Assembly (NCBI GenBank): GCA_028023455.1
Contig: JAQFVV010000011.1
Location: forward strand, 4,464,001 to 4,528,000
Length of the DNA stretch: 64,000 nt
Origin: Epiperipatus broadwayi
Taxonomy: Eukaryota; Animalia; Onychophora
Direction of reading: 5' to 3'
Part shown: in pieces, positions 1 through 60,530 of the stretch
Layout: every line of letters begins with the position of its first letter
How positions within the stretch are numbered: the stretch's first letter is position 1
Made by a program: the position numbers and the translations under genes
The notes under the pieces: model-generated
The model's database searches: none
The model's input: only the letters and a program-made list of their open reading frames with translations
What the model was told of the DNA's origin: nothing

Positions 1-2005
1 AAAAGTAGATACAGAGAATCGTCAATTTCAAGACAGTTGGAAAGAAAAGTATTATTTTATTCTGAATAAAGATTTGCCTATATGTTTGCTGTCCAATGAA
101 TCTGTATCAGTCAACAAAGAATACAACTTGAAGAGACACTTTACTTCAAAACATGCAAATCATCAAAAAATTGATGGACAACTACGAAAAGATGAAATAG
201 AGAAATTGAAGAACTTGGATACCCAGCAGCAAATGTTCACCAAGCAAAGAATGCAGCATGGAAGCATTGTGAAAGCCAGCTTTGTGTTAAGTGAAAAAAT
301 TGCTAGGTATTCTAAATCATTTGGTGAAGGAGAATTTATCGAAGAATGTCTGTTGGATGTTGCAAGTATAATATGTCCTGAAAAGAAAAAAGATTTTGAA
401 AATATTAGTTTGTCAAGAAGAACTGTTGTCTGGCTGATAGAAATTATAGCTGATGATATCCAAAAAAGTTTAAAGGAGAAGATTGCTAGATTGAAAGCAT
501 TTTCAATTGCTTTGGATGACGGCCCTGATGCCTCTGATACAGCACAACTAGCAATATTTATTTGGGGAGTTGATGTGGATTTTAATATCACAGAAGAATT
601 GTTCGCACTTCAGCCACTAAAAGGAACAACTACTGGTGAAAATATATTTGAAGAAGTCAAAACAGACTTCAAGATATTTGGACTTAAATGGAGCTCACTA
701 TCTAGAATATGCAGTGATGGAGCTCCTGCAATGATTGGTGCATGGAAGGGGTTTATTGGAATAGTTCATGAAAAAGCAATAAAACTAGAGATCCATCTGG
801 AAAATTTAAAAAATTTTCATTGCATTATCCACCAACAAAATCTATGTGCAAAATCAATTAAATTTACAAATGTTATGGAAGTTGTAGTATTCAATATTAA
901 CTGTATTGTCACATGCATTTAATCTCTGCCAATTTAAGATATATTTGGCAGGTTTATTTTCAGATTATGAAAATGTGTCTTATTATTGTGAAATGAGGTG
1001 GCTGAGTAAAGGTAAAATGTTAAAATGGTTTTATGATCTGAGACAAGACATAGCAGATTTTATGGACTTAAAAGGAAAAACAATTAACCAAGTAAGAGAT
1101 GATGAGTGGGCTTGTGATTTGGCATTTCTTGTAAATGTCACTGGATATCTAATGAACTTAATCTTAAATTGCAAAAACCAGGACAATTGATTCATGTACT
1201 ATGTGGACATGTCAATGCTTTTTCTAATAAACTAAAATTGTTTGTTAAAGTCAGATAAGAGCTAAAAATTGTTACCATTTTCCTACTCTAGCAACTCATA
1301 AAAATATCCCTTATAATTGTTATGGAGATGAAGTGAAGGCATTAATAGAGTAATTTGATACAAGGTTTCCTGACTTCCAAAATAAAGGCTCCATATTCAC
1401 TATATTTTCTTGTCAGAAGGATGCTGATATAAATAACGTGCCAGAAAATTTGCAGATGGATCTTATTGAGATTCAAGCAGATTTAGTGCTAAAATCACAG
1501 TTTAACATCATTCCTTTGACAGATTTTTATAAACATTTGATGGAAGAAAAATATAGAAATTTAAATGCTTTTTCAAGAAGAATTATTTGTCTTTTTGGCA
1601 GCACATATATGTGTGAACAGTTTTTTTTCTAGAATGAAATTGAATAAATCAAAAATTCGGACAAGAATAATGGACGAAAACCTTGAAAATTTTATGTGAT
1701 TATCCTTAAGCATTATTCCCATCAATACTGATAGTCTCATTGTTGAAGTACAAGACCAATCCTCGCATTAAATTGTTATGTCATTATTATGAAATTTATG
1801 TAATCCTTTACCATTCACTATTACTTTGTAATCTTTAATTATTTGGTCTGGCCCTTGACTCGAAGACAGACATTTAACCTAAATAAAAGGTATTTAACCA
1901 TAATGAGAATTAGATATTAGTGGGGGGGGGGGCATCATTATTAACTAATTTTGTACTATTTAATAGAAAAAAATGTTCATGGTAGAGAAAAGTTTGGGTA
2001 CTCTG
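1..2005 (+). mobile_element. Degenerate hAT DNA transposon (SPIN/Buster, GTF2IRD2/EPM2AIP1-like transposase); 5' end outside window; in a POLD3 intron
   Basis: Broken frames 74-922, 906-1190 and 1438-1632 give YNLKRHFTSKH, FSIALDDGPDASDTAQLAIFI, ICSDGAPAM, FHCIIHQQNLCA, RWLSKGKML and LFGSTYMCEQFF, typical of hAT transposases. A hAT-type right end AAAAGTTTGGGTACTCTG finishes at 2005. Confidence 0.92.
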
Positions 2006-8500: not shown

Positions 8501-11500
8501 TTTAGCCTTAATAAGAATCTAATTTGCATTATTTGTAGAACATTATGAAGTATCAATGGGTAACATGTAATAATGAAGCATTGTAAAATATAGAAACAAA
8601 AAAGAAAACAAATGATGTGTCACAAATAAAATAAATAGAAATGCAAATACAGAGATAATCTTATCATGGAAAATTTTTTTTTTTTTAAGTTATAAAATCC
8701 TATGTTGATGATCTAACCAATTATACAGCTTTATATACATGTATGCATAAAACTTCAAGGGAAATAAAATGGCATATAATCTAATGAAACTTAATGACTG
8801 AATTATGCTAATTAAATTTTATGGACTTTTTTTATGTAGTTCCAATTACTATACAATTAGAGAAAAAGTCAGATGCAAAACAAATTTTTATTATAAAAAA
8901 GACTGATGTGAATAGTTTGTTTTTGATCAAAATATTTCTTTAGATTGTGTTATTTTGTTACAAAGTTTTTTAATTTAGTGATAATTAAAGTGGGGGACAA
9001 TTATGTATATTTCTTTGAAATAAAAATAATTTTTTAATAATATATGCAATTTACATGTGTACCTCCCTCTTCTATTTTCCAGAAACCTAGCCCTGTTAAA
9101 AACAGAATCACATCAAATGCAAAATCTGGAATAAAAGATTTATTTGCTGCACAAGAAAATAAAAACAAAGATGTAAATAAAAAAGAGGAAAAGATTATTT
9201 CTAAAAAAAAAGAAGAAAAAATTGTTTCTAAAAAAAATATCTTTGAGGTGAGTTAAATTGATTTTGAAATTTCAACTTTTTTTTATTTTTTAAGCATGAA
9301 TCATTTTTAAAACACACACTTTTATTTACCTATTGTTTTAAATGTCTTCTTATTTCAACATTTAGATATTTTTGATATATTAACTACATTCATGTGATTC
9401 AAATATTTTAAACCAGTGCATTATTTGTCAATGTGCTCTAAATTTTGTATCATTATCCTAAGTATGATATATTAAGCTTACTTTATTCTTTCTAAGAAAA
9501 ATGTCTTCAAAAACTATATAGAGATCTAGCTAGAAGTTAACAGAAATATGTAAGATATTACATTTTGATTGAAAAATAAACAATTGTTTATAAAGTAATT
9601 CATTGATTTTACAAAAGAAACATAAATAAGCTTATTTGAAACTGGCTACATTTGATTGCATTATTCAAGCCACTAAACAAGAAAATTTGCCTTTAAAAAA
9701 AAAAAAAAAAAATGCATATTTTGATGCTAATTTAGAAAATTGGATGAAAATAATGCAGTTGAATAAAACTTTTTTAAGCTTTAATTACCATTGAGATAGA
9801 AAATGGTAGAGTTAAAATTAGTATATTATAACATATTTTTAATCACATGTATTAAATAAATATAGCATTAGAATTAAACTTGTATATTTAAGGTAATTAA
9901 AAGGAATTGGCTGCAATATTTGTGTTATGTGTGTTGCAATTAGAAATAATTCATGCATAAGTTTTGTTTTGTTGGTTGAAATATTTGTTCACAAAGTGTA
10001 GATTTATTTTATGAAAAATGCTTAGTTGTAACTAATTTAAAATTGCTATTTATTTTACTAGAATTCATGTTATACAAGTAAGAACAAACACAATCATATT
10101 AACCAAGAAAAAAATAAAGGTATTTCCATTTAAATTTTAATAAACATTATTATTTTATAATTTTATCTCTGATTTGTATATAGTCAAAAATGAATAATTA
10201 TACATATATTAAGATGAAACAATAATTGGCTACAAATTAATGACACTTTAAAAAAAATAGTGAAGACATACACCATTAGTCATCTGTTGAATGATGAAGT
10301 CCTTTAGTTAAGAAAACTGAGATCCAATTATTGACCAATAGTTTGATGACTATATGAATTAACTAAGAGCATCCTAAGTCTATTTAAAAATCTTAAGCTA
10401 TCTTAAAAAAATACTGCAAGTTCTATTAGATTGAACCTCCATGTTACGGTCATGATAGTTGAATACTCTACCCATGAGTCATATATGTGTGTACACAGAA
10501 TTTATCTAAAGAAACTAATTTGTAAGCACTACTATACTTAGGTCATTAAAATTAATACTTTTTTGTATCCAAATTAAATAAAAGTTTATAGTGACTAATG
10601 TCCAATTCATCTTGAAATAATTTGTCATTAGATGTGTAAAGCTTCATTATGTGATATTCAACTGGAGAAAGTAATCAGTTGTATGTTTTATCATGCTAGA
10701 AACTAAATTACTTTTTTTGCATGATTATTGTCTTAAATGTTGCTATATTTATTGGGTGCTTAGATTAAGGACATGATTCGTTATGCATTGGCATGTAACT
10801 AATATTAAACCGTAACATTTAAACAGTATATATTTCATAAGAATGTGTGATATTAATAAATTGTATCAGAGAGATTACCGTGAACTCCGAAGTCAATGTT
10901 TTTATGTAGTTATGGAAATAATCTATATTGTAACTACAAATAAATAAAAAATCATATTTTATTTGCAGTTTTTTAAATTTTTTTTATACTTAGTACGTAA
11001 TATTAAAAAATACATTTTGATTACCTATAGTTTTCATTGCAACTTTTTTTTTTTAGTTATAACCTTTATATTTATTTGTTTAAGAAGTTTTAGAGTGTAA
11101 TAAATAAATTTAAAAAATTATGTATTTTATTACATAAATATAATAAAAGTAAATTTGCAGTGTTTTAAATCTTTTTTTTTTTTTTTGCATTTGGATACAA
11201 TTAAGTGCTTAAATATTAATAATATTAATGGATTGTTTTTAGATACTTCATAAAATTCATAGTGTGAATTATTTTTTTTGAATTTTAAATAATAGCAATG
11301 TAAATGTATATCTGTAATGTGGTATTTTATCTATTTTTTATTGATTGTTTTTTAGTTGTCGTTAATTATCGATATAGATAACTAACAACATTTAAAAAAA
11401 CTTACACAGCTATAATAATCAGCTAAAGTGACTTGGTTTATAAGCATTAAACAATCTTCTACAAACTTTATTAAAATAATATAATTTTTTTATCTATATC

Positions 11501-20500: not shown

Positions 20501-23500
20501 GAAGAATATGTCATCTATATGTCACTTACTGTCTTCAATTATTATTATTTCTTTTTTTGTCTTTGTTCTTTTATTTTTGTTATATTAGGTCAGATATATT
20601 AATTAGAATAATAGAAATATATTTCAGGTAATCATATCTATTATAAATATTACATTTCTATGCAGAAAACATCTTGTGCATAATTTTCATAGTTACATTT
20701 AAATTGGTAATTTCTGTAATGCTATCTGGGTTCAGTGATAATTTTATTTCCTAAATGTGGTGTAATTTTAATTAAAAATCCAAGCAAAAGTAGCTTTTTT
20801 ATAATTAATATATCTTAAAATGCTTGCAAAGTATGCTGTTCAAATATCATTGAATTATGATATAATAAAATTACTATTACCTGATTTTTTTTTTGTAATA
20901 AAACTCTTTTTGGCACTGATTTCTTTTGCCACCTTTAAATTCCTTGAAAAGAATGCAAAATCTGTGTCCATCTATATTTACATTTGATATTAAAATACAT
21001 GATATGTTTTTTTAATTTCTGGATATATATATTATGCAAAGTATATGTGTAGTGGCTGCAGAAAGGAGACCCTTTGATTCCTCTTGGAGGCCTTAAAGGA
21101 ACCGAGCAGGGCAAATTCCTAATGTCCACTCCATACGTTCTTGTCATTGCAGCTGTTATTACTATGTGATTATTCATATAGTATACGAACATGGATGGGC
21201 TGCTCACCAACACGCATTAGCCACCGTGGTGAGTTTATTGGCTTTTTATCTCCGAGTTTAAGAATATTTTTTCAATATATACAATCATGACAAACAAAAA
21301 TAAATCATGGCCCTTATTCCCAGGTGGCTGTAAAGTCACCAACCAAGGCAGCGGTTGGTGGCCGAAGGCGGAGGGTGCTAAGAATCCCCTGATTGCGGAC
21401 TCAGGCTGCCATTTGATGATGACTTTTTATTTAGGTACTTACAACTGCAGATCACTTTCAAGTGAAGAAAGATTGCAAGAGTTAGAAGAAGAACTGTCTT
21501 ATATTAAATGGGACATTATTGGACTTTGTGAAGTTAGAAGAAAAGGTGAAGAAACAATTGATTTAAAAAGTGGACATATACTCTACTATAAAGGCACAAA
21601 TATTGGAAATACAAGTGGAGTAGGATTCATTATAAATAAAAAATGGAAGAATAACATTGTGGAGATTGATGGTGTATCAGACAGAGTGGCAAGATTAGTT
21701 TTACAACTTAATAGCAGATACCAAATGCAGATAATTCAGGTTTCTGCCCCAACAAGTTCTCATAGTGATGAAGTTATAGAAGATTTTTATATGGATGTAC
21801 AAAAAGCTTTTGATCAGAGTAAAAAAACATTTTAAAATTGTTATGGGAGACTTTAATGCTAGAATTGGTAAACAAATGAAAGATGAAAATGCTGTAGGTA
21901 ATTTTGGTTATGGTAATAGAAATGAGAGAGGACATAGACTTGTGGAGTTTGCAGAAAAAGAAAAACTTTATATTATGAATTCTTTTTTTGAGAAAAATGT
22001 TAAAAGGAAATGGACATGGAAGCATCCAAATGAAGGTACAGCAGAATTGGATTATATTTTGACTAACAGAAAATACATATTTCAAGATTGTAATGTTCTT
22101 AATAAATTCAACACAGGAAGTGATCATCGATTAGTAAGATGTAAGATCCACGTTAACGCAAAACTAGAGAGACAAAAATTATTAAGAAAAACAATATTTA
22201 CAGTTGATATTCCTAATCTTCAGAAACATTCTAATGAATTTAAATTAGAACTTGCAAATCGGTTTCAAGTATTAGTAGATTTTGAACATGATTCAGATTT
22301 GAATGACATTAATAGGAAAATAAGCGATACACTTTTAAAAACTGCAACAAAGATAGCTGGTAGAAAAAAGCAGCAATTGACCAATAAAATTTCTACTGAC
22401 ACTAGAGAATTTATGAAGAAAAGAAGGAATATGAGGATATACAACAATGATGCATTAAAAAAGATTGAGTATCTCGAATTTTGTAAAATGGTGTGGAAAA
22501 GAGTTGAAAATGTTATAAGAAAGTATAATTGTGAACTAGCAAGGAAAGCTGTAAGAGTGTAAAACAACATTTTGGTATTGGTAGGAAATTTATATCTGCA
22601 ATAAGAAAAAAAGATGGCATTATTACTAAAAAGAGAGATGGCATCATGAAATGTGTAGAAGACTTCTATGAAGAATTATATAGTAATAAAGAACAAGTGC
22701 CTCCTATACCTATTATATCTTCCGAATTGCCCAGAATTTTGAATGAGGAAGTGAGACATGCAATTAAATTTATGAAGAAAGGGAAGGCTCCAGGTAATGA
22801 TGGAATTATAATTGATGTATTAAAAGAAGCAGGTGAAGAAATACAAAAATTTTTAGCAAAGTTATATACTAAATGATAAAGATGTACCAGATGATTGGAA
22901 GAATGCAGTATTAATATTAATATTTAAAAAAGGTGATAAAGAAGATATTAGAAATTACAGACCTATCAGTCTTTTATCAGTTTTATACAAAATTTTTACT
23001 AAGATAATTACAACTCGTCTACAGAAAACACTGAATTTCCACCAACCAAGAGAACAAGCTGGATTTAAAAGTGGTTTTAGCACAGTAGATCATATCCAGG
23101 TATTGAGAGAAATTATAGAAAGGACAAATGAATACGAGTTGCCATTATGCTTAGGATTTGTAGATTATGAAAAGGCATTTGATTCTATAAACATTTCTTC
23201 AGTGATTAAAGCATTGGATCATCAAGGTGTAAATCCAGGATATTATCATATTTTAAAGAATATTTACAAAAACGCAACAGCAACAATTAGATTACATAAT
23301 GATAGTAGTAATAACCTGTATATTTATACTTTACGTTTGTCTTCAATATAATATTAAATCGTGCTTTCACACTTCCAACCTAAAGCTATAACAACAAATT
23401 GAAAACTAAATTTGTTGTTATAGCTTTATGTTGGAAGTGTGAAAGCACGATTTAATATTATAATGATAGTAGGAAAATCAACATTGAAAAGGGTGTAAGA

Positions 23501-26500
23501 CAGGGTGACTCCATATCTCCAAAACTTTTTACAACAGTGCTGCAAGAAGTATTTTGTGGATTAAAATGGGAAGCTAAAGGAGTGAAAGTAAATGGAGATT
23601 ATTTAAGTCATTTAGATTTTGCAGATGATGTAGTTGTTTTTGCAAATAATGCTTTAGAGCTACAGGAAATGTTGCAGGAGTTATCAGATGAAAGTAGGAC
23701 TAAAGATAAATGTTAAAAAGACTAAAGTAATGTTTAATAGATTTTTTCAAAATATGAAAATAAAGATTGATTATGATGAGTTAGAAGAAGTTAACAGTTA
23801 CAAATACCTTGGTCAGATTATTAATACAGATGGAAATATAATGGATGAAATTAATCATAGAATTAAACTTGGTTGGAGTGCTTTTGGTAGAAATAACTTG
23901 ATACTAAAAGGAAATATGCCAAGTGTTTGAAAAGGAAGGTTTTTGATAAATGTGTTTTGCCAGTTCTTACTTATGAATCTGAGACTTGGACACTTAATAG
24001 AATAGCAATACAGAGACTTCAGACCACTCAAAGAAGTATGGAGAGATGCATGTTGGGAGTAACAAGAAGGGATCGAAAACGCAATGTATAGGTAAGAGAA
24101 CAAACAGGTGTTACTGACCTCATTGAAAAAATTAAAAGACTGAATTGGAGTTGGGCTGGACATATTGTTAGAAGAGATGATAATAGATGGACAATTGAAA
24201 TTTTAAACTGGATTCCAAGAGATTGTAAAAGACCCAGAAAGACACCACATATGAGATGGATGGATGAAATAAAGTGTGCAGGGGTGATGTGGAGAAGAGA
24301 AGCTAAAGATAGGAAAAGATGGATTGAACTTGGAGAGACCTTCATCCTGCAGTGATGATGATGATATGTGTAGTGAGAGAAATTGATCAGGGAATGAAAG
24401 CAGCATCTCAGCTGATTTGATATTTGCTTTTGTAATTATCATTCTCGTCTACAATCTATATACAAGATTAGGCAACAAATGAAAGAGAATGGTTTTTTTT
24501 TTTTGTAACATAATTAACTTCATTACTATCGAGCATTAACTTAATATAGCCAGTGCTAGGGCATTTGTCATCCCAAATCTTTGTACATATATCTACAATC
24601 ATAAAATGGAAATATCTTTAAATCAAAATTCTGTGTGCTTGTAGTACTTTGAGTATATATATAATAACTGATAGATTGGAATCATCCAGAATAATAAAAT
24701 ACTAATTCAATCATATAAATTGGAATAATATTATACTTGCTTACAGTATTCCCACCATTTACAGTAACCAGTAAAGTTCATAATATCTCAGAAAACTTTA
24801 GATGATGGAAATACCATAAGCTAGCTATAGGTTTTATTATAATTTAGGATATTTGATTGGTATTTTATTAGTAATATTTTGGATAATTGCAGTTTTTTAT
24901 TTAATATATACCAGTGAGAATCTTGATGACTGAGATAACATGTCTGAAAAAAGTTTGATGCCAAACATTGAATTTTTCCAATGATTCGGATAGGATTATT
25001 ATCATTTTATCTTGCATTATGAGAGTATAACATGTCTTTATTTGAAAATATTTTCAATTTTGTTTTTACAACTTTTTAGTCTTTACTGCTCAACTTTTAT
25101 TCTTAATTTTTGCAAAAAAAAAATATGTAGAAGTTTTCGTGGTTATTTTCCTGATTTTAATATGAAGAAATTTCCTTTGGAAGATCAATATTGTGAATAT
25201 TGTTTAAAAAGTTTTGACATATATGTTGCAAATTAACATTGCACTTTATAGAATTTAATTTTGAATTTAGTAAATTGCTATTCTTAAGAATTGCTAAATT
25301 TATACTGTTATGAGCTCATAAGTATTTTGATTTTTAGTTATTATTTATGAGAAATTAAGAAAATTTGGAAATGTATTGAATTCAAGCTTTATTATTTTCT
25401 AATTTAATTTTCCCAAATCCAAGAAATTTTTTTTTTAAAGATTTCTTTATCTAGAGACTTCATTTTTGATGTAATTATAAATTCTTCATGGAATTTTTGC
25501 CCAGTTTTACTTTTTTTTTTTTTTTAAGCTTATATAATCTAATAGTATGTTGAGAATATTTAGATTCAGAATAATATTTGAATGTTATTCATAAATTTTT
25601 TACACAATTAAAAGTTTGCACAAAACTGTTTTATCATAATGTATATTACTTGTTTAGGTTCTTTTATAACTGTTGATTATTGATTTGTTTTATATCATTT
25701 AAAGTATAGTGATAAAGTGATGGTTGAATGTCTTATGATCTCCTGGGCAACAAACTGATTGCTTTTATTATATTATGATTTCAAAGCAGATACCACATTT
25801 AATTGCTTCTGTGTTTTATATTTTCTTATGATTTATTATTTTATAATAAGAAATTTTTATATTTGAAATTGCTGTTAGATTTCTGATCTGTTATGAAAGA
25901 TTGAGCATTTGAATTTTAAAGCAATAAAAACTTGCATTTTTCATTTGTTTTGAAGAATTGTAATCTTAAACACATTATTCAAGTTAAGGATTAAATAGAT
26001 ATAAAATCTGGTTGTTTTTTTTGTGTGTGTGTGTAAATTATTATTTCTCCAACTTACAAAAGCTATTCTAGAATTTTCAGATATATATTTCTTAAAAGAT
26101 AAAATGAATTAACATTTCGAGTATATTTAACAATATAATCTTAAAAATGTTTTATTTTTAGAAGCAGTTTTAGAGTCTGAAAATCATTCATCTGTGATAT
26201 CAGATCAAAGTGAGGAGAACATAATCCAATCTGAAGTAAAACAAAAAATTCCTAATGAAAATAATGGACATTCTTCTCGACGTAGACAAAAAAAACTTGT
26301 TGCAAAAAAGTTTTTGGATGAAGATGGTTTTATGGGTAGGTTTTTATTGATTTTATATATAACATTTAATAAAAGTTATTGTTTGTAAAAGAAATTATAA
26401 GAAATTTTTTTTTTTACTTTTACATTTAGTAACAAAAAAGGTTTGGGAAAGTGCTTCAGAAAGTGAGCCTGAAAATCGTGTACCATCTCCACATCCTGTG

Positions 26501-26617
26501 CCAAAAAATAATACTCATGAGACAAAGTCTCACAAAAGCAGTAAATCAAATAAGAAAAAGTCATCTCCCATTAGAGCTAAACAAGCAGCTCTAACAGCAT
26601 TTTTCAAAAAGATTTAA
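2535..26617 (+). CDS. POLD3: DNA polymerase delta subunit 3 (p66/Cdc27-like), 3' portion, 9 coding exons; 5' exons lie before the window
   Basis: Exons 2535-2599, 6370-6472, 9083-9247, 10062-10119, 17603-17675, 18119-18153, 18233-18301, 26162-26335 and 26430-26617 join with AG/GT boundaries and consistent phases (2,0,0,1,2,1,1,1). The product has LYIADFD...YSAISC, basic PKKKRKR, FLDEDGFMVTKKVWES (DPIM-like) and the terminal PIP box QAALTAFF. Confidence 0.93.
3418..4102. mobile_element. Penelope-like fold-back: GIY-YIG endonuclease fragment between ~190-bp inverted arms
   Basis: Arms ~3418-3617 and ~3915-4102 are reverse complements. The + spacer reads FYGELPTNISIKLAQHK...DHSLDPHNNKVVLQNHDQKRNFKETWFI, like the C-half of a PLE endonuclease. 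Confidence 0.7.
6370..6472 (+). CDS. POLD3: POLD3 internal exon (KYSAISCPDAVLRSESEINQKDESLHLHSLVTNVK)
   Basis: Polypyrimidine tract + AG, gtaatg donor, phase fits the previous exon. Resembles human FSAIQCAAAVPR. Confidence 0.88.
7216..7533. repeat. Fold-back (~118-bp inverted arms) with degenerate hammerhead-like cores, probably PLE-derived
   Basis: Arms ~7216-7332 and ~7411-7533. The minus strand of the left arm reads CCAG CTGAG GGCTTG TGTGAT CAAGTC GAAA TGTT GG. Confidence 0.7.
9083..9247 (+). CDS. POLD3: POLD3 internal exon (KPSPVKNRITSNAKSGIKDLFAAQ...KNIFE)
   Basis: ttttccag acceptor, gtgagt donor, 165 nt, open in phase 0; overlaps ORF 9044-9256. Confidence 0.85.
10062..10119 (+). CDS. 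POLD3: POLD3 small internal exon (NSCYTSKNKHNHINQEKNK)
   Basis: ttttactag acceptor, G|gtattt donor; phase 0 in and 1 out, as the downstream chain requires. Confidence 0.6.
11895..12015. repeat. 59-bp tandem duplication
   Basis: attaaa(t/c)tgctttatagattattgat(c/a)atctatattgtttataatatcagtttgttttt occurs at 11895 and 11954. Confidence 0.95.
12035..12370 (-). mobile_element. tRNA-derived SINE-like unit with hammerhead-like tail, left inverted copy
   Basis: Reverse complement of ~13712-14056. Contains TAGCTCGGTTGG (A box), GAGTTAGACT (B-box-like) and CACCTGAAGA...AAAACGTG. Confidence 0.7.
12482..13625. mobile_element. Non-autonomous Merlin-like DNA transposon (1144 bp)
   Basis: ~56-bp imperfect TIRs GGT(A/G)CT..TCTT(T/A)TAGCTAAAGATGCC...ATGGCGCGGTTTTC. 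Perfect 8-bp TSD CAAGATTA at 12474-12481 and 13626-13633. Internal ~45-bp repeats at ~13260-13385. GG termini with an 8-bp TSD fit Merlin. Confidence 0.85.
13712..14056 (+). mobile_element. tRNA-derived SINE-like unit (TATA + tRNA-like cloverleaf + hammerhead-like motif), right inverted copy
   Basis: TATAAATA at 13717-13724. tRNA-like sequence from G13753 (GACAGAA TAGCTCAGTTGG...GAGTTTGACT...ATACTGTC; acceptor stem largely paired). CAC CTGAAGA A GAATG..TATTC GAAA CATT GTG at 13868-13910. Confidence 0.72.
15485..15931. mobile_element. MITE-like fold-back with an inverted pair of hammerhead-like cores
   Basis: Terminal inverted TAGAGGGGATTTAAACACAGA(T/C)TTTCAAGCTC and long imperfect arms. The + strand at 15803-15828 reads TTGATGA GTGCTG TTT CAGCAC AAAA. 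A related fragment lies at ~43733-43850. Confidence 0.8.
17603..17675 (+). CDS. POLD3: POLD3 internal exon (EYPSKKEKSNSTKSKHQETNKDRYR); alternative same-phase donor after 17669
   Basis: tattatag acceptor; donors gtaccg (17670) and gtaaga (17676); phase 1 in, phase 2 out. Confidence 0.7.
18119..18153 (+). CDS. POLD3: POLD3 35-nt micro-exon (LIDRSVFSSES)
   Basis: T-run + aatag acceptor, cag|gtataa donor; phase 2 in and 1 out bridges the flanking exons exactly. Confidence 0.65.
18233..18301 (+). CDS. POLD3: POLD3 internal exon (EEEDPLPKKKRKRIQSYSSSSEE; NLS-like)
   Basis: ttcctaatttag acceptor, g|gtattt donor. Resembles p66 KKRRRIKLPESDSSEDE. Confidence 0.88.
20233..20764. repeat. Near-spacerless fold-back element (~250-bp arms, ~25-nt loop)
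   Basis: acaacatttaggaaataaaattatcactgaaaccagatag...aataataattgaaga mirrors tcttcaattattattatt...ctatctgggttcagtgataattttatttcctaaatgtggtgt. Confidence 0.85.
21054..21199 (+). ncRNA. HDV-like (CPEB3-type) self-cleaving ribozyme fold at the 5' end of the RTE element
   Basis: P1 GGCTGCA (21054-60)/TGCAGCT (21148-54) with G-U at the cleavage site. P2 TCCA(C)TCCAT (21125-34)/ATGGATGGG (21191-99). P3 ACG/CAT, L3 TTCTTGT, P1.1 GT, P4 hairpin 21157-85, J4/2 CGAAC with catalytic C21186. Confidence 0.82.
21055..24363 (+). mobile_element. Full-length, inactivated RTE-clade non-LTR retrotransposon in a POLD3 intron
   Basis: APE endonuclease (GTYNCRSL, WDIIGLCEVRR, VMGDFNA, GSDHRLV) and RT (FVDYEKAFDSI, GVRQGDSISPKLF, LDFADDVV, YKYLGQ) broken by stops and frameshifts. 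(TGA)n tail. 12-bp TSD ATATGTGTAGTG at 21043-21054 and 24364-24375. Confidence 0.95.
23309..23459. mobile_element. 151-bp hairpin insertion (PLE-tail-like) interrupting the RTE RT domain
   Basis: 13-bp TSD ATAATGATAGTAG at 23296-23308 and 23460-23472. ~53-bp near-perfect inverted arms with a short loop. Its sequence matches 60376-60480. Confidence 0.88.
26162..26335 (+). CDS. POLD3: POLD3 penultimate exon (...RRRQKKLVAKKFLDEDGFM)
   Basis: tttttag acceptor, g|gtagg donor; contains the first half of the DPIM-like DEDGF motif. Confidence 0.92.
26430..26617 (+). CDS. POLD3: POLD3 last coding exon (VTKKVWESASESE...KQAALTAFFKKI*)
   Basis: tacatttag acceptor; PIP box QxxLxxFF just before TAA at 26615-26617. 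Confidence 0.94.
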
Positions 26618-31480: not shown

Positions 31481-33039
31481 TCCAGTAATGTGCTTTTATA
31501 ATAAGCGAGGAACATCTTTAATGCTAATCTTCAGTTATCACAAAATTAAATTTCCTTTCACTTTTCTTGTAATCTTTTTCCATCTTTATTTATCATTTTT
31601 ATTCATTTCTAAATTAATGACTGTTTACAAGATGGTTTACTTTGATCTTCATATACATGTTATACAATTAACGACAGTGCACTAGATCCATATATCGCTC
31701 TATATAGTGCTACAGTTGATAAATAATTTAACATCAAGTTGTTAGATAAAATAAAAATAATATAGTAATTCAACCAAAGATGGTACTAGTCAGTTAGGTG
31801 TACTGTGGCCGCTAGGCAACGCAGTAGTACCATCAAGAACCCCCAAGAAACTTGCAAGTGATAAATTTTTATCCAAAAATCGCTGAAATCGAAAAAATTA
31901 AAACGCTTAAGGCAAAATAAATTGAACAAATCCTTCTAAAATACAAATCAAAAATCGAAGAAAACGCTATAAAATTCGAATTACAAAAACAGAAATCAGT
32001 GAAAATATGTCAAACGCACCCACCCATGAAAAATTCTATCCAAAAATTGAACAAATCCTTCTAAAATATAAATCGAAGAAAACACTATAAAATTTGAATA
32101 TACTAAATCTCAAAAAAAATAACAAAACTTCATTAATGGCAGAAATGTAGTACATTTAAAAAAAAAATTTCCTCTGATTTTCAGCACTATTACGTGGAGT
32201 GTAATAATTAACAAACCTTAATAACAGATTAAGTAATTAAATAGAGATAACGAGCTCATAGCCATTTAAAAAATAGAAGTAGCTATAACTTACAAAAACA
32301 GAATTTGGTCTAATATATACCCTGCCTTCCCAATCAAAAATAAGTACTTTTCAAAAATATACTAAATTTCATCAATATTTAAAAAAATAAGACTTTCAAC
32401 ATTTGAAAATAACCTATGCGATCAGATTTCAAAGCAGCGATTTATATAAGCTAAAAAGCAATAAACATTAAACTGGAGAGCTATTTGTCTTTCCTAAAAA
32501 TTTATCAAATTAATTAATCTCTGCTTTGAAATTATGGCATATCATTTAAATATTATAAGTTTTTAAAATAGATTTATAGAGATCTGCGGTAAAAAAATAT
32601 TAGCAATTTTCTTCCAGGCTGAGTTGTCCGGCATTTGTAGTAGGCACTTGATATTTGCAGCATAAAAATTCATTAAAAAGAACATTATTTTGAGGCTTAT
32701 TGGAGCACAATTATTTAGAGAACAGATTGCAGCACACTTAACTAATAACAGCAGATTAAAGAAGGTAGTTCAACGCCAAATGGTGGTTTAAAAAATACAA
32801 CAAAGATGGCCGAAATAAACAGCAGGCTTTAACAAACAATTATTTAAAGAAGGTTGTTTTTGCAAAAAATAGGCAAAAGAAAGTTCAAATTTTTAGACTA
32901 TCGGTGCAAAATTGTTTAGAGAAACATTCAAATTTTGAGCCTTATTGGAGCAAAATTATTTAGAGAAGCCTTTTTTCAAACAGATTGCAGCACTTATTAG
33001 CAGATTTAAAAAATAATTTAACATAAGACATGGACAGAT

Positions 33040-34005
33040 TACACCAATTTAGAAATTGTAAAATTTATACTGATGGTATAGTAATGGCTTGTAATATAGC
33101 ATCGAATATATCTTCATCATGGTGCAGTTGTCGCCACATGAATTCAATTAAGTATGCTCCAGGTGATGTCAAGTGATTCCCCTCTCTTTTATTGCGTTAT
33201 TTTAATAGCCCCCAAAGTCTTTATGTTTTGCATATGCTCCCCAGTAGAAGGATCAACAAAATTATACGTGTGATTGATTTTGAAATGTTGGTAATTTGCA
33301 GCATTCAATTTATCCCTTTTGAAGGCCTTCCAACAGTCAGAATATATGGAGGATCCTGATGCTATATGTTGTTTAATGGCATCTAGGAGAACAGACTGAT
33401 GACCTAGTGACAATGAAACACTTGTTTCTCTACATAAACCACCAAATAACCACTGTTGTGGAAGAATTCTTCCCTGTTGATTTTTGCATTTAGTGACTAA
33501 GAGTTTTGTCGACCTCTACAATTTTTCCTGGGCCTCCAATTTTGCAGGTGGGCAAGATAGCAGACTTTCTTTACAGGCTTCTCTCAAATATTGCTTCCAT
33601 GCAATGACAGTATTTTTATCCAAATCATTTATTCCTGATTGTATGGTCAATTGGTTTTTACTCCAATAATAAATGATTCGGATGGCTGTGACAAATGACA
33701 ATCTGCAACCGATGTTGTACTTCCATTGTGCCCTTGGACTCATGTAAAGGGTTATTTGATGGCCATTGACATGCACTTTTTGAGAGAGCAGAACTTACTT
33801 TGGAAGAACTCCACTGCCTCATGTTCCATCTTTGGGATATCCCAAATTTTTATCATTTTGAGTAAGAAAAGATTACCGAAAAGATGTTACTTAAATTTCA
33901 ATGTGGGTTTTTGAAATGTTGTTTGAAAGTTTGTGCATGCTTAATATTGTATTCATCTGTGTAAAAAAAAATCCATATTAACCCCGTCAAAAAATAAAAA
34001 TCCCG
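33040..34005 (-). pseudogene. Merlin transposase copy 1 (the only copy with the native C-terminus EFMWRQLHHDEDIFDAILQAITIPSV*)
   Basis: ORF fragments 33189-33413 and 33516-33776; frameshifted. Confidence 0.88.
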
Positions 34006-34905
34006 TCGCCACATGAATTCGACTAAGTATGACTCCAGGTGACATCGAGTGGTTCCCCTCTTTTATTGCGCTATTTTAATAGCCCCCAAAGTCTTTCTAG
34101 GTTTTGCATATGCGCCCCAGTCGAAAGATCGACAAAATTATATGTGTGATTGACTTGGAAATGTTGGTAACCTGCAGCATTCAATTCATAACTTTTGTAG
34201 ACCTTCCAACAGTCAGAATATATGGAGGATCCTGGTGCTATATGTTGTTTAATGGCATCTAGGAGAACAGATGTTCGACCTAGAATAGCGACAATGAAAC
34301 ACTTTCGTTTCTCTACATAAACCACCAAATAACTACTGTTGTGGAAGAATTCTTCTGTTTGTTTTTGCATTTAGTGACTAGAGTTTTGTCGACCTCTACA
34401 ATTTTTTCCTGGGCCACCAATTTTGCAAATTGGGCAAGATAGCAGTCTTTCTTTACAGGCTTCTCTCAAATTCAAATATTGCTTCCATGTAACGACAGTA
34501 TTCCTATCAAAATCATTTATTCCTGATTATATGGTCAATTTGTTTTTGCTCCAATAATAAATGATTCAGATGGCTGTGACAAATGACAATCTGCAACCAA
34601 TGTTGTACTTCCACTGTGTCCTTGGACTCACATAAAGGGTCATTTGATGGCCATTGATGCACACTTTTTGAGAGATCAGAACACTTTTTTACTTTGAAAG
34701 AACGCCAGTGCTTCATGTTCCATCTTTGGGATATCCCAAATTTTTATCATTTTAAGTAAGAAAAGATTACCGAAAAAATGCTACCTAAATTTCATTGCGG
34801 GTTTTTGAAATATTGCCTGAAATTTTGTGCATGCTTAATATTGTATTCATCTGCATAAAAAAAAAAAATTCATATTAACCCCGTCAAAAAATAAAAATAA
34901 TCTCG
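34006..34905 (-). pseudogene. Merlin transposase copy 2 (900-bp unit)
   Basis: ORF 34071-34370 (KRKCFIVAILGRTSVLLDAIKQHIAPGSSIYSDCWK...LERLWGLLK). Confidence 0.88.
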
Positions 34906-35787
34906 TCACCACATGAATTCGACTAAGTATGACTCCAGGTGGCATCGAGTGATTCCCCTCTTTCTTTTATCGTGCTATTTTAATAGCCTCCAGAGTCTTT
35001 CTATGTTTTGCATATGCGCCCCAGTAGAAGGAAACTACAAAATTATATGTGTGATTGACTTTGAAATGTTGATAACCTGCAGCATTCAATTCATCACTTT
35101 TGTAGGCTTTCCAACAGTCAGAATATATGGAGGATCCTGGTGCTATATGTTGTTTAATGGCATCTAGGGAAATAGACGCTGTTCGACCTAGATTAGTGAC
35201 AGTGGAACACTCGTTTTTCTACATAAACCACCAAATATCCACTTGTGGAAGAATTCTTCCCTGTTAGATTTTGCATTTAGTGACTAGAATTCTGTCGACC
35301 TCTACAATTTTTCCTGGGCCTCCAATTTTGCAGGTTGGGCAGGATAGTAGAGGCTTCTCTCAAATATTGCTTACATGCAATGACAGTATTCCTATTCAAA
35401 TCATTTATTCCCGATTGTATGGTCAATTGGTTTTTATTCCAATAATAAATTATTCAGATGGCTGTGACAAATGATAATCTGCAACCAATGTTGTATTTCC
35501 ATTGTGCCCTTGGACTCGCTTAAAGGATCATTTGATGGCCATTGATGCACACTTTTTGAGAGAGCAAGATACTTTTTTACTTTGGAAGAACTCCATTGCC
35601 TCATGTTCCGTCTTTGGGATATCCCAAATTTTTGTCATTTTAAGTAAGAAAAGATTACCGAAAAGATGCTACCTAAATTTCAATGCAGGTTTTTGAAATG
35701 TTGCCTGAAAGTTTATGCATGCTTAATATTGTATTCATCTGCGTAAAAAAAAAAAATCCTTATTAACCCCGTCAAAAAATAATCTCG
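34906..35787 (-). pseudogene. Merlin transposase copy 3 (882-bp unit)
   Basis: Same unit, bounded by tc(g/a)ccacatgaatt and tattaaccccgtcaaaaaataa. Confidence 0.88.
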
Positions 35788-36713
35788 TCGCCACATGAAT
35801 TTGACTAAGTATGACTCCAGGTGATGTTGAGTGGTTCCCCTCTCTCTTTTATTGCGCTATTTTAATAGCCCCCAGAATCTTTCTATGTTTTGCATGTGCG
35901 CCCCAGTAGAAGGAACAACAAAATTATATGTAATTGATTTTGAAATGTTAGTAACCTGCAGCATTCAATTTATCACTTTTGTAGGCCTTCCAAGAGTCAG
36001 AATATATGGCGGATCCTGGTGCTATATATTGTTTAATGGCATCTAGGAGAATAGACGTTGTTCGACCTAGAATAGCAATAATGAAACACTTTCGTTTCTC
36101 TACATAAACCACCAAATAATTACTTTTGTGGAAGAATTCTTGTTTGTTTTTGCATTTAGTGACTAGAGTTTTGTCGACCTCTACAATTTTTTCCTGGGCT
36201 CCCAATTTTGCAGGATGGGCAAGATAGCAGACTTTCTTTACAGGCTTCTCAAATATTGTTTCCATGCAATGACAGTGTTCCTATCCAAATCATTTATTCC
36301 AGATTGTATGGTCAATTGATTTTTACTCCAATAATAAATGATTTGGATGGCTGTGACAAATGACAATCTGCAGCCCTCAAACCAGGTTCCTTTCCGAAGT
36401 GCTATGCAACTTTGACCTGCACCAATGTTATACTTCTATTGTGCCCTTGGACCCACGTAAAGGGTCATTTGATGGCCATTGACACAAACTTTTTGAGAGG
36501 GCAGAACATTTTTACTTTGGAAGAACTTCACTGCTTATGTTCTGTCTTTGGGATATCCCAAATTTTTATCATTTTGAGTAAGAAAAGATTACCGAAAAGA
36601 TGCTACCTAAATTTCAGCGCGGGTTTTTGAAACGTTACCTGAAAGTTTTGCATGTTTAATATTGTATTTTTCTGCGGGGAAAAAAATCCATATTAACCCT
36701 GTCAAAAAATAAT
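35788..36713 (-). pseudogene. Merlin transposase copy 4 (keeps 49 bp missing from copies 1-3)
   Basis: ORF 35948-36265. The extra segment 36373-36421 encodes part of ...IALRKGTWFEGCRL. Confidence 0.88.
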
Positions 36714-59337: not shown

Positions 59338-60375
59338 CTAAACGTTCAAAAACGAAAATGTATTAGAAACATCAAAATATAAAAACTTTTTTATTGGACA
59401 CATTCCACATTGAAATTAGTATAGAAACTAAAATACTTATGTGAATCCAATATCATTACTAGGAATATAAAAAGAATAAGAGTAACTAATTTCAAAGATC
59501 AAGCACTATTATAAATGGTACAGAAATATTATAAATTTTATATAAAAACATTTCAATATTTATATGTTCAATGCAAATGCGAAAATTATTTAATTTTAAG
59601 AAACTTAACTTACTTTAAAAAACAAATGTAATATTTATTACTATCTATGATACTTCCAATTTTGATATATGCATTTATTTCTAGTAATGAATAAATCCAT
59701 TGTTATTCAATATTTAACTTACAAAATAAACTTGACTCAAAAATCACTTTGCTAAACATTACGATCAAGTTCAACCTCGTATATTTTCAAAGGTATTTCC
59801 AATCTTCTCTAGATATTCAACAGAAATATCGCACTTAAAAAGTGTTTATTTTATATTTTCTGCAATTATTATTTAAGTTTAAACAACCTGCGTTCTAAAC
59901 ATATACAAATTCCATACCATTTTAATGTAAATATAATTTACAATTATCAATTTTTAACACTTATTTATTAACTAATAATAACCTTTAAAAAAATTAACCG
60001 GGATATTTTACATTAAAAACATTTCTCGTATAAATTATAAATAGAATTGCAACTGAATTGAGATTATCTTCATTACTTCCACCATTCATTCTAGACAAGG
60101 AAAAAAAACCAAAAATTGAAGGTGGTTTTTTGTGATAACTATATACAAATCAAAATCTGTGAACCACAAATATATCCAATATCCATCGCAAACTGGAATA
60201 TGTACAGTAAACTACAACGAAAGCTTTTTTACAAACTTTTTGAACTCTAATGTACTAACTTTATAATACTTAAATATTTAGACAATATTTAAATCTAGAG
60301 ATCCATACAACTATTTAAGACACTATACTTGAACACACATCAAATATAATTTCATATTCTATTTTTAATATTAAG

Positions 60376-60530
60376 TAATAATCTGTAGATTTATACTTTA
60401 CGTTTGTCATCAATATGATATTAAATCGTGCTATCACACTTCCAACGTAAAGCTGTAACAACAAATATAAAACTGAATTAAATGGCTGAGCGCTTTCAAG
60501 AAGATGTACTTCTCATATTCATAGCCAGTT
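60376..60530 (-). mobile_element. PLE-tail-like repeat with a non-canonical hammerhead-like motif; same family as the 23309 insertion
   Basis: 60376-60480 matches 23309-23412. Minus strand 60527-60483 reads TGGCT ATGAATAT GAGAAG TACAT CTTCTT GAAA GCGC TC AGCCA. Confidence 0.65.

Follow-up and report, generated by a model that had tools for sequence, protein, structure and literature searches.

An HDV-like ribozyme motif at the 5′ boundary of a decayed RTE retrotransposon copy in a POLD3 intron of Epiperipatus broadwayi

Does a retrotransposon copy that lies in sense orientation within an intron of POLD3 begin with a self-cleaving ribozyme, and, if so, has that ribozyme been disarmed for the sake of the gene that carries it? 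The question was raised by an earlier note on a 64-kb stretch of DNA from the onychophoran Epiperipatus broadwayi (contig JAQFVV010000011.1, assembly GCA_028023455.1), referred to here as the window, whose numbering is used for all positions. The note described a complete motif of the hepatitis delta virus (HDV)-like class, described in 2009-2011, at the exact 5′ boundary of a retrotransposon of the RTE type. The window is very AT-rich (G+C = 26.6%). We conclude, with a probability of about 0.9, that positions 21054-21200 are the 5′ HDV-like ribozyme of an abundant RTE family, carried by a dead full-length copy in sense orientation within a POLD3 intron.

The element boundary and the ribozyme fold

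The boundaries of the element were set by an 11-nt target-site duplication (TSD), of which 9 nt are certain, since the first 2 nt overlap the tail repeat. Because the duplication is present at both ends, the first base of the element is G21054, a position obtained without reference to any RNA fold. The element and its associated features are as follows.

21054-24365, + strand: RTE-type retrotransposon without long terminal repeats (non-LTR), a dead copy of 3312 nt, recognized by its TSD, Pfam matches and open reading frame (ORF) pieces in different frames
21043-21053, strand not assigned: left TSD, ATATGTGTAGT, identical to 24364-24374
24364-24374, strand not assigned: right TSD, ATATGTGTAGT, directly after the (TGA)n tail
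24353-24365, + strand: (TGA)n microsatellite tail of the RTE
23343-23466, strand not assigned: palindromic insertion of 124 bp, resembling a miniature inverted-repeat transposable element (MITE), which breaks the reverse transcriptase (RT) region of the RTE

Within the body, Pfam detected an AP-type endonuclease (EN; Exo_endo_phos_2, 32 bits) and, on a fragment, a weak RVT_1 match that falls below cutoff (16 bits). The coding region is broken, with ORF pieces spread over several frames, and its closest named proteins are annotated as ‘craniofacial development protein 2-like’. The protein names, the size, the single EN-RT ORF and the simple-repeat tail together fit the RTE clade, and on this sequence evidence the element is provisionally classified as an RTE-clade non-LTR retrotransposon of 3312 nt, with an APE-type endonuclease followed by RT, a tail and a TSD. 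Self-BLAST of the window did not find a second copy of the RTE, and an exact-protein look-up of the window's own RTE ORF returned no record. The MITE-like palindrome is near-perfect, with 58-nt arms that are 97% complementary and an 8-nt spacer, and a second copy (90% identical) lies at 60374-60479.

Immediately inside the left TSD, every segment of a nested double pseudoknot was assigned, in the order P1, J1/2, P2, P3, L3, P3′, P1′, J1/4 (P1.1), P4, J4/2 and P2′, where P denotes paired, J joining and L loop segments. All of the following lie on the + strand.

21054-21200, + strand: whole HDV-like ribozyme motif, 147 nt, with predicted cleavage 5′ of G21054
21054-21060, + strand: P1 5′ strand, GGCTGCA, forming 7 bp with 21148-21154 (first pair G21054·U21154; -10.1 kcal/mol)
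21061-21123, + strand: J1/2 peripheral domain (P1.2), 63 nt, folding on itself at -15.4 kcal/mol, with the closing helix AGGAG/TTCCT
21124-21134, + strand: P2 5′ strand, forming 10 bp with 21191-21200 (-11.0 kcal/mol), with C21129 bulged
21135-21147, + strand: P3, ACG/CAT, around L3, with its central C21136·A21146 mismatched in this copy
21138-21144, + strand: L3, TTCTTGT, between the P3 strands
21148-21154, + strand: P1 3′ strand, TGCAGCT
21155-21156, + strand: J1/4, GT, in which G21155-C21140 is the sole possible pair, giving a single-pair P1.1
21160-21183, + strand: P4 hairpin of 10 bp with a 4-nt loop (21160-21169 with 21174-21183; -10.8 kcal/mol)
21184-21190, + strand: J4/2, TACGAAC, with the presumed catalytic C21186 and CGAA at 21186-21189
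21191-21200, + strand: P2 3′ strand

The first nucleotide of P1, the G of the G·U pair, coincides in position with the element start defined by the TSD, so that the predicted cleavage site stands at the TSD/element junction, as the earlier note had proposed. Its complete set of segments, its 7-bp P1 opening with G-U, its L3, its CGAA in J4/2 and its description of a J1/2 that folds on itself were likewise recovered at the places it gave. Three of its assignments needed adjustment: P2 has the single bulge described and 10 rather than 9 bp, P4 is present with 10 rather than about 12 bp, and the GT of P1.1 is there but offers a single pair. The candidate catalytic C21186 sits in CGAAC, ahead of P2′, and a plain minimum free energy (MFE) fold recovers P1 and P4 (z = -2.26). 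With the majority sequence of the family (CGT) P3 would have 3 pairs, and the central C·A mismatch is found in the POLD3-intron copy.

The frequency at which such an arrangement occurs by chance was estimated with an HDV-like descriptor of our own, which was made deliberately loose: a 7-bp P1 with G·U first, a P3 of 3 nt in which 2 or more pairs form, an L3 of 6-8 nt with C at the third position opposite the G after P1, a hairpin, C-N-R-A, and a P2 with 7 pairs or more. In the window, counting both strands, the descriptor has a single match, the 21054 site. Dinucleotide shuffles of the whole window gave 0.25 matches per 128 kb, so an unanchored match is by itself weak evidence. When the descriptor was anchored to G21054, none of 100,000 local shuffles matched, and when it was allowed to fall anywhere in the local 207 nt, none of 5,000 did.

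Related ribozymes and compensatory change

Relatives of the element were collected by a profile-free search with its first ORF against 1.84 billion representative proteins, after which the DNA surrounding several of them was fetched. The relatives of this ORF share 55-69% protein identity with it, and an alignable ribozyme was found at three loci: L006 (a metagenome contig), L007 (Centruroides sculpturatus) and, on the minus strand, L008 (C. vittatus). In each, the ribozyme lies directly upstream of sequence homologous to that which follows the ribozyme of the window. At L006 and L007 it also precedes a related EN ORF (58-59% protein identity) and begins directly after AT-rich flank, and at L008 it is inverted beside a 5′-truncated RTE copy (69% identity). 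The J1/2 blocks TAACTG-GAAGGAGACCC, GGAACCG and AATGTCC are shared with these relatives, which shows common descent. At L001-L004 and L009-L011 (45-59% protein identity; a metagenome contig, Diabrotica, Achroia, Branchiostoma and others), neither the descriptor nor BLAST found a ribozyme; these loci are 5′-truncated, embedded in other repeats, or too distant.

The window and the three ribozyme-bearing loci formed the covariation set of four sequences. Pairs in P1, P2 and P3 were counted by script, because the MAFFT alignment splits the 5′ strand of the window's P1. P1 reads GGCTGCA/TGCAGCT in the window, GGCCTGC/GCAGGCT in L006 and GGTCCGC/GCGGACT in L007 and L008; it has 7 pairs in each sequence, the first G·U is invariant in all four, and 5 of the 7 pairs change on both sides. 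The third pair of P3 switches from C-G to G-C, the strands being ACG/CGT for the window's family, GCC/GGT for L006 and ACC/GGT for L007. In P2 an unpaired base is found at the same spot in the relatives, and two pairs, T-A and A-T, become C-G. The closing helix of J1/2 is retained with three different sequences, the J1/2 of the relatives folding at -25 to -33.6 kcal/mol, and in the P1.1 region the relatives have GG opposite CC. The C of J4/2 is at the same place in all four sequences, and L3 fits T-Y-C-N-Y-G-T in all four. RNAalifold, run blind on the MAFFT alignment, recovered P1, the J1/2 domain and P4, with compensatory changes in 12 of 42 pairs, together with a P3-like helix of 4 pairs that is offset from our manual assignment. 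The covariation that the earlier note had looked for as a check is thus present, in the form of compensatory changes in related RTEs from three lineages.

An HDV model was another check envisaged there, and it gave no confirmation: no Rfam model of the HDV, CPEB3 or drz type matched, whether the whole window was scanned with the gathering score as threshold or 401 and 89 bases with E ≤ 10. This negative is real but weak, because the models ignore pseudoknots and penalize the 63-nt J1/2. The only matches in these scans were to small nucleolar RNA and microRNA models, and they were set aside as chance.

Could the region be just a structured 5′ untranslated region whose likeness to HDV is fortuitous? 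Such a view would accommodate both the lack of an Rfam match and the rate at which the descriptor matches shuffled windows, but it would have to account for the failure of all anchored shuffles and for a fold that three lineages have kept through compensatory changes, its position being the same relative to the ORF in L006 and L007 and relative to downstream conserved sequence in L008. We regard it as close to refuted.

Two side results came from the same searches. At 1150-1410 of L008, an RTE 5′ end with its ribozyme is inverted next to an oppositely oriented 5′-truncated copy, and at the junction the P1-containing motif GATCCTTTGCGGACCA occurs about 3 times in tandem, the last partial. Of two metagenome DNA-pattern scans, the first found no candidate and the second found 1 chance match (L005), which by eye reads as coding sequence, apparently of a cation-ATPase.

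Family variation, the lesions of this copy and its place in POLD3

Variation within the family was read from Logan contigs of 1 DNA run and 3 RNA-library runs, placed on 20900-21500 at 80% likeness. In the DNA run, 47,395 contigs fell on the element part of this interval, and summed depth, which is not copy number, reached millions on the element vs. about 36-250 on the flank. The family is present in the RNA libraries of the source organism and of two others. More widely, 20-48% of the exact 31-mers of 21054-21440 occur in public RNA and DNA runs of about 12 organisms, which indicates that several species share the family almost without change, either as close relatives or by horizontal spread.

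Most of the variation is CpG decay. The DNA run has 68 variable places, of which 56 are CpG transitions (25 C>T and 31 G>A). At 21146, within P3, G is the majority letter in all four runs (54% in DNA, 57-74% in the RNA libraries) and A accounts for about 46% of the family DNA depth and 26-43% of the RNA-library depth. The P3 of the family is therefore ACG/CGT, and A21146 in the POLD3-intron copy represents CpG decay, as the earlier note had read it. A C>T change removes the presumed catalytic C21186 itself in 11-36% of family depth, its neighbor G21187 is changed (G>A) in 8-31%, and the other family CpGs show 7-53% decay. A further family variant, G21166>A, converts a G·U pair in P4 to A-U.

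T21142 in L3 had been interpreted as a second decayed CpG of this copy, an interpretation that the family data do not bear out. None of the runs has a majority T>C there, and at most a low-support T>C (4 of the 4 A>G places and 3 of the 4 T>C places of the DNA run are itemized); T therefore appears to be the family state at 21142, and CG at this position of L3 is found only in scorpion-type relatives. At 21253-21254, outside the ribozyme, the POLD3-intron copy keeps CG and the family majority is TG (57% in DNA, about 90-98% in the RNA libraries), so the majority letter is not always ancestral.

A lesion that had gone unnoticed lies in J1/2, and the two CpG changes were accordingly not a full list of this copy's defects. 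Other family copies carry GGCTGCAGAAAGGAG followed by TTTGCTGTTAACT immediately before the base aligned to 21061, from which it follows that the POLD3-intron copy lost 21 nt between two GAAAGGAG repeats. The deletion removes half of the J1/2 closing helix. With the 21 nt restored, J1/2 is 84 nt long and folds at -29.5 kcal/mol with a closing helix of about 10-11 bp (AGGAGTTTGC/GCAAATTCCT), and the full ribozyme measures 167 nt.

Several observations weigh against the conclusion that the region is a family ribozyme. The covariation is drawn from three lineages only, and variation within the family, being nearly all CpG decay, contributes none. Given a P1.1 of one pair, and U in L3 at a place where C stands in the relatives, cleavage by the family ribozyme may be slow. 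To the negative result with Rfam must be added zero RNA depth on the intron flank in the Logan contigs of the 3 RNA-library runs, and no pile-up of RNA ends at 21054 in these contigs, which carry neither direction nor end information, so that RNA 5′ ends are not readable from them.

We next consider the gene in which the element lies. Its position relative to POLD3 was established from two downstream exons.

26194-26334 (approximate ends), + strand: penultimate POLD3 (Cdc27/p66) coding exon, matching Pfam CDC27 positions 341-387 at 14.6 bits, below cutoff alone
26426-26617, + strand: last POLD3 coding exon with the stop codon; the CDC27 match covers 26426-26614 and positions 388-442 of 443 (31 bits vs. 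the 24.5 cutoff)

The two exons cover contiguous CDC27 profile positions on the same strand as the RTE, and the last of them encodes a C-terminal PIP-box-like QAALTAFF. There are no coding candidates between the RTE and 26194, and the first 340 positions of CDC27 must lie upstream; the RTE is therefore intronic and in sense to POLD3, which upholds the placement made in the earlier note. An upstream candidate at 9041-9253 had no Pfam match.

What, then, would this copy do in a POLD3 transcript? Our guess is that it would cleave poorly or not at all. That it is still active and cuts POLD3 pre-mRNA measurably, the mismatch and the short J1/2 merely slowing it, is unlikely, though there is something to be said for it. 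C21186, P1, P2, P4 and L3 are intact, J1/2 is still closed by 5 bp at -15.4 kcal/mol, and a peripheral helix is reported to bring little further benefit beyond about 4 kcal/mol (PMC4908430); moreover, A21146 makes up 26-43% of RNA-library depth, so silent copies are not its only carriers. Against this, the middle pair of a 3-pair P3 is broken, P1.1 consists of one pair, and in the MFE fold there is competition from an alternative helix between GTT (21155-21157) and AAC (21188-21190). The intron flank has zero reads, so sampling of intron RNA is unsupported.

The earlier note went further and suggested that the changes had been favored because an active ribozyme in sense would destroy the transcripts of an essential gene. 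The RTE does lie in sense inside POLD3, and mRNA output can fall when an intron contains a fast ribozyme. The family data nevertheless make this proposal very improbable. The same A21146 is shared by about 46% of the family's depth in the DNA run, the variable places are mostly CpG transitions, and decay reaches other CpGs of the family, that of the catalytic C included. In the first 450 nt of the POLD3-intron copy, 1 of about 11 family CpG sites has decayed; with 3 of the 11 in P3 or J4/2, a hit there has a chance of about 1 in 4. The eroded ORF speaks for general neutral decay, and RTEs are expected in introns in any case (PMC6765202).

A broader version of the idea takes the P3 C·A variant as more than decay: it would mark a slow-cleaving sub-lineage, or a class of copies that sense introns of essential genes, POLD3 among them, preferentially tolerate. 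We consider this a long shot. If it were true, host selection would act across the genome to sort tens of thousands of intronic self-cleaving motifs by their strength.

A proposed life history and comparison with known ribozymes

The observations suggest the following course of events, in which cleavage is predicted from the motif. Active members of the family would need no precise promoter and could be transcribed inside a longer RNA such as a host intron. Once folded into its nested double pseudoknot, with the large J1/2 (P1.2) holding P1 and P2 together, the ribozyme would cut just 5′ of its first G, thereby setting the 5′ end of the RNA that is later reverse-transcribed. An RNA template cut at this G would yield a DNA copy that starts exactly at G21054 next to the TSD. 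The POLD3-intron copy would have gained the P3 mismatch (G21146>A) and the 21-nt deletion in J1/2 once inserted, or already in its immediate source. Its decay also includes several frame breaks in the ORF and the MITE-like insertion.

Among known HDV-like ribozymes, that of CPEB3 is similar in being an intronic, sense-strand fold. Like the window's motif, it has a 7-nt L3 of the UUCNNGU type, a J1/4 GU with a one-pair P1.1, and CGAA in J4/2. It differs in occupying a single conserved host locus and in having a short J1/2, whereas the motif described here is one of tens of thousands of copies, has a J1/2 of 63-84 nt and finds no Rfam CPEB3 match.

A closer parallel is provided by the drz-Agam-2 family of Anopheles RTEs, which shares the first-base position, the nested double pseudoknot, the large structured J1/2 (P1.2) and a life in host introns without a promoter of its own. 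The present family differs in sequence, has no Rfam drz match, and the closest relatives found here are in scorpions; its P1.1 is one pair, and the copy at hand is decayed. In drz-Agam-2-1, a structured J1/2 pinches P1 and P2 together and makes cleavage as much as three orders of magnitude faster (PMC4908430). RTEs are reported to bear HDV-like ribozymes, to have no promoters and to be transcribed from introns or by read-through (PMC6765202).

The 5′ ribozyme of R2 resembles the RTE motif in processing a co-transcript to release retrotransposon RNA and in its extended peripheral structure. R2 is specific to ribosomal DNA, and the cut made by its ribozyme often falls upstream of the junction (PMC3774820). 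In the present element the predicted cleavage site is at the junction, as is reported for RTE ribozymes in the passage of that paper that cites Ruminski 2011 (PMC3774820).

The family adds a well-supported, very high-copy RTE lineage to the HDV-like class, one whose nearest relatives found here are in scorpions and which is characterized by a large P1.2, a minimal one-pair P1.1 and its escape from existing Rfam models. Since those models miss the ribozyme, finding ribozyme-headed RTE 5′ ends in this genome requires descriptors or a new covariance model. The POLD3-intron copy itself is an ordinary example of the use of host introns by RTEs for transcription. For the regulation of POLD3 it has no particular message, unless orientation and lesions prove to be biased across the genome.

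Two further features of the window lie away from the element. At 2-919 (+ strand), a 306-aa open frame that runs off the start of the window has a zf-C2H2_12 (Spin-doc-type) match of 23 bits, below cutoff, and resembles a domesticated or hAT/ZBED-type transposase. At about 33000-36700 (+ strand), near-identical open frames, with translations such as ...LLRYFNSPQSL... and ...KKRLPKRCYLNFN..., recur every 900 bases or so, and this recurrence at about 0.9 kb suggests a tandem array.

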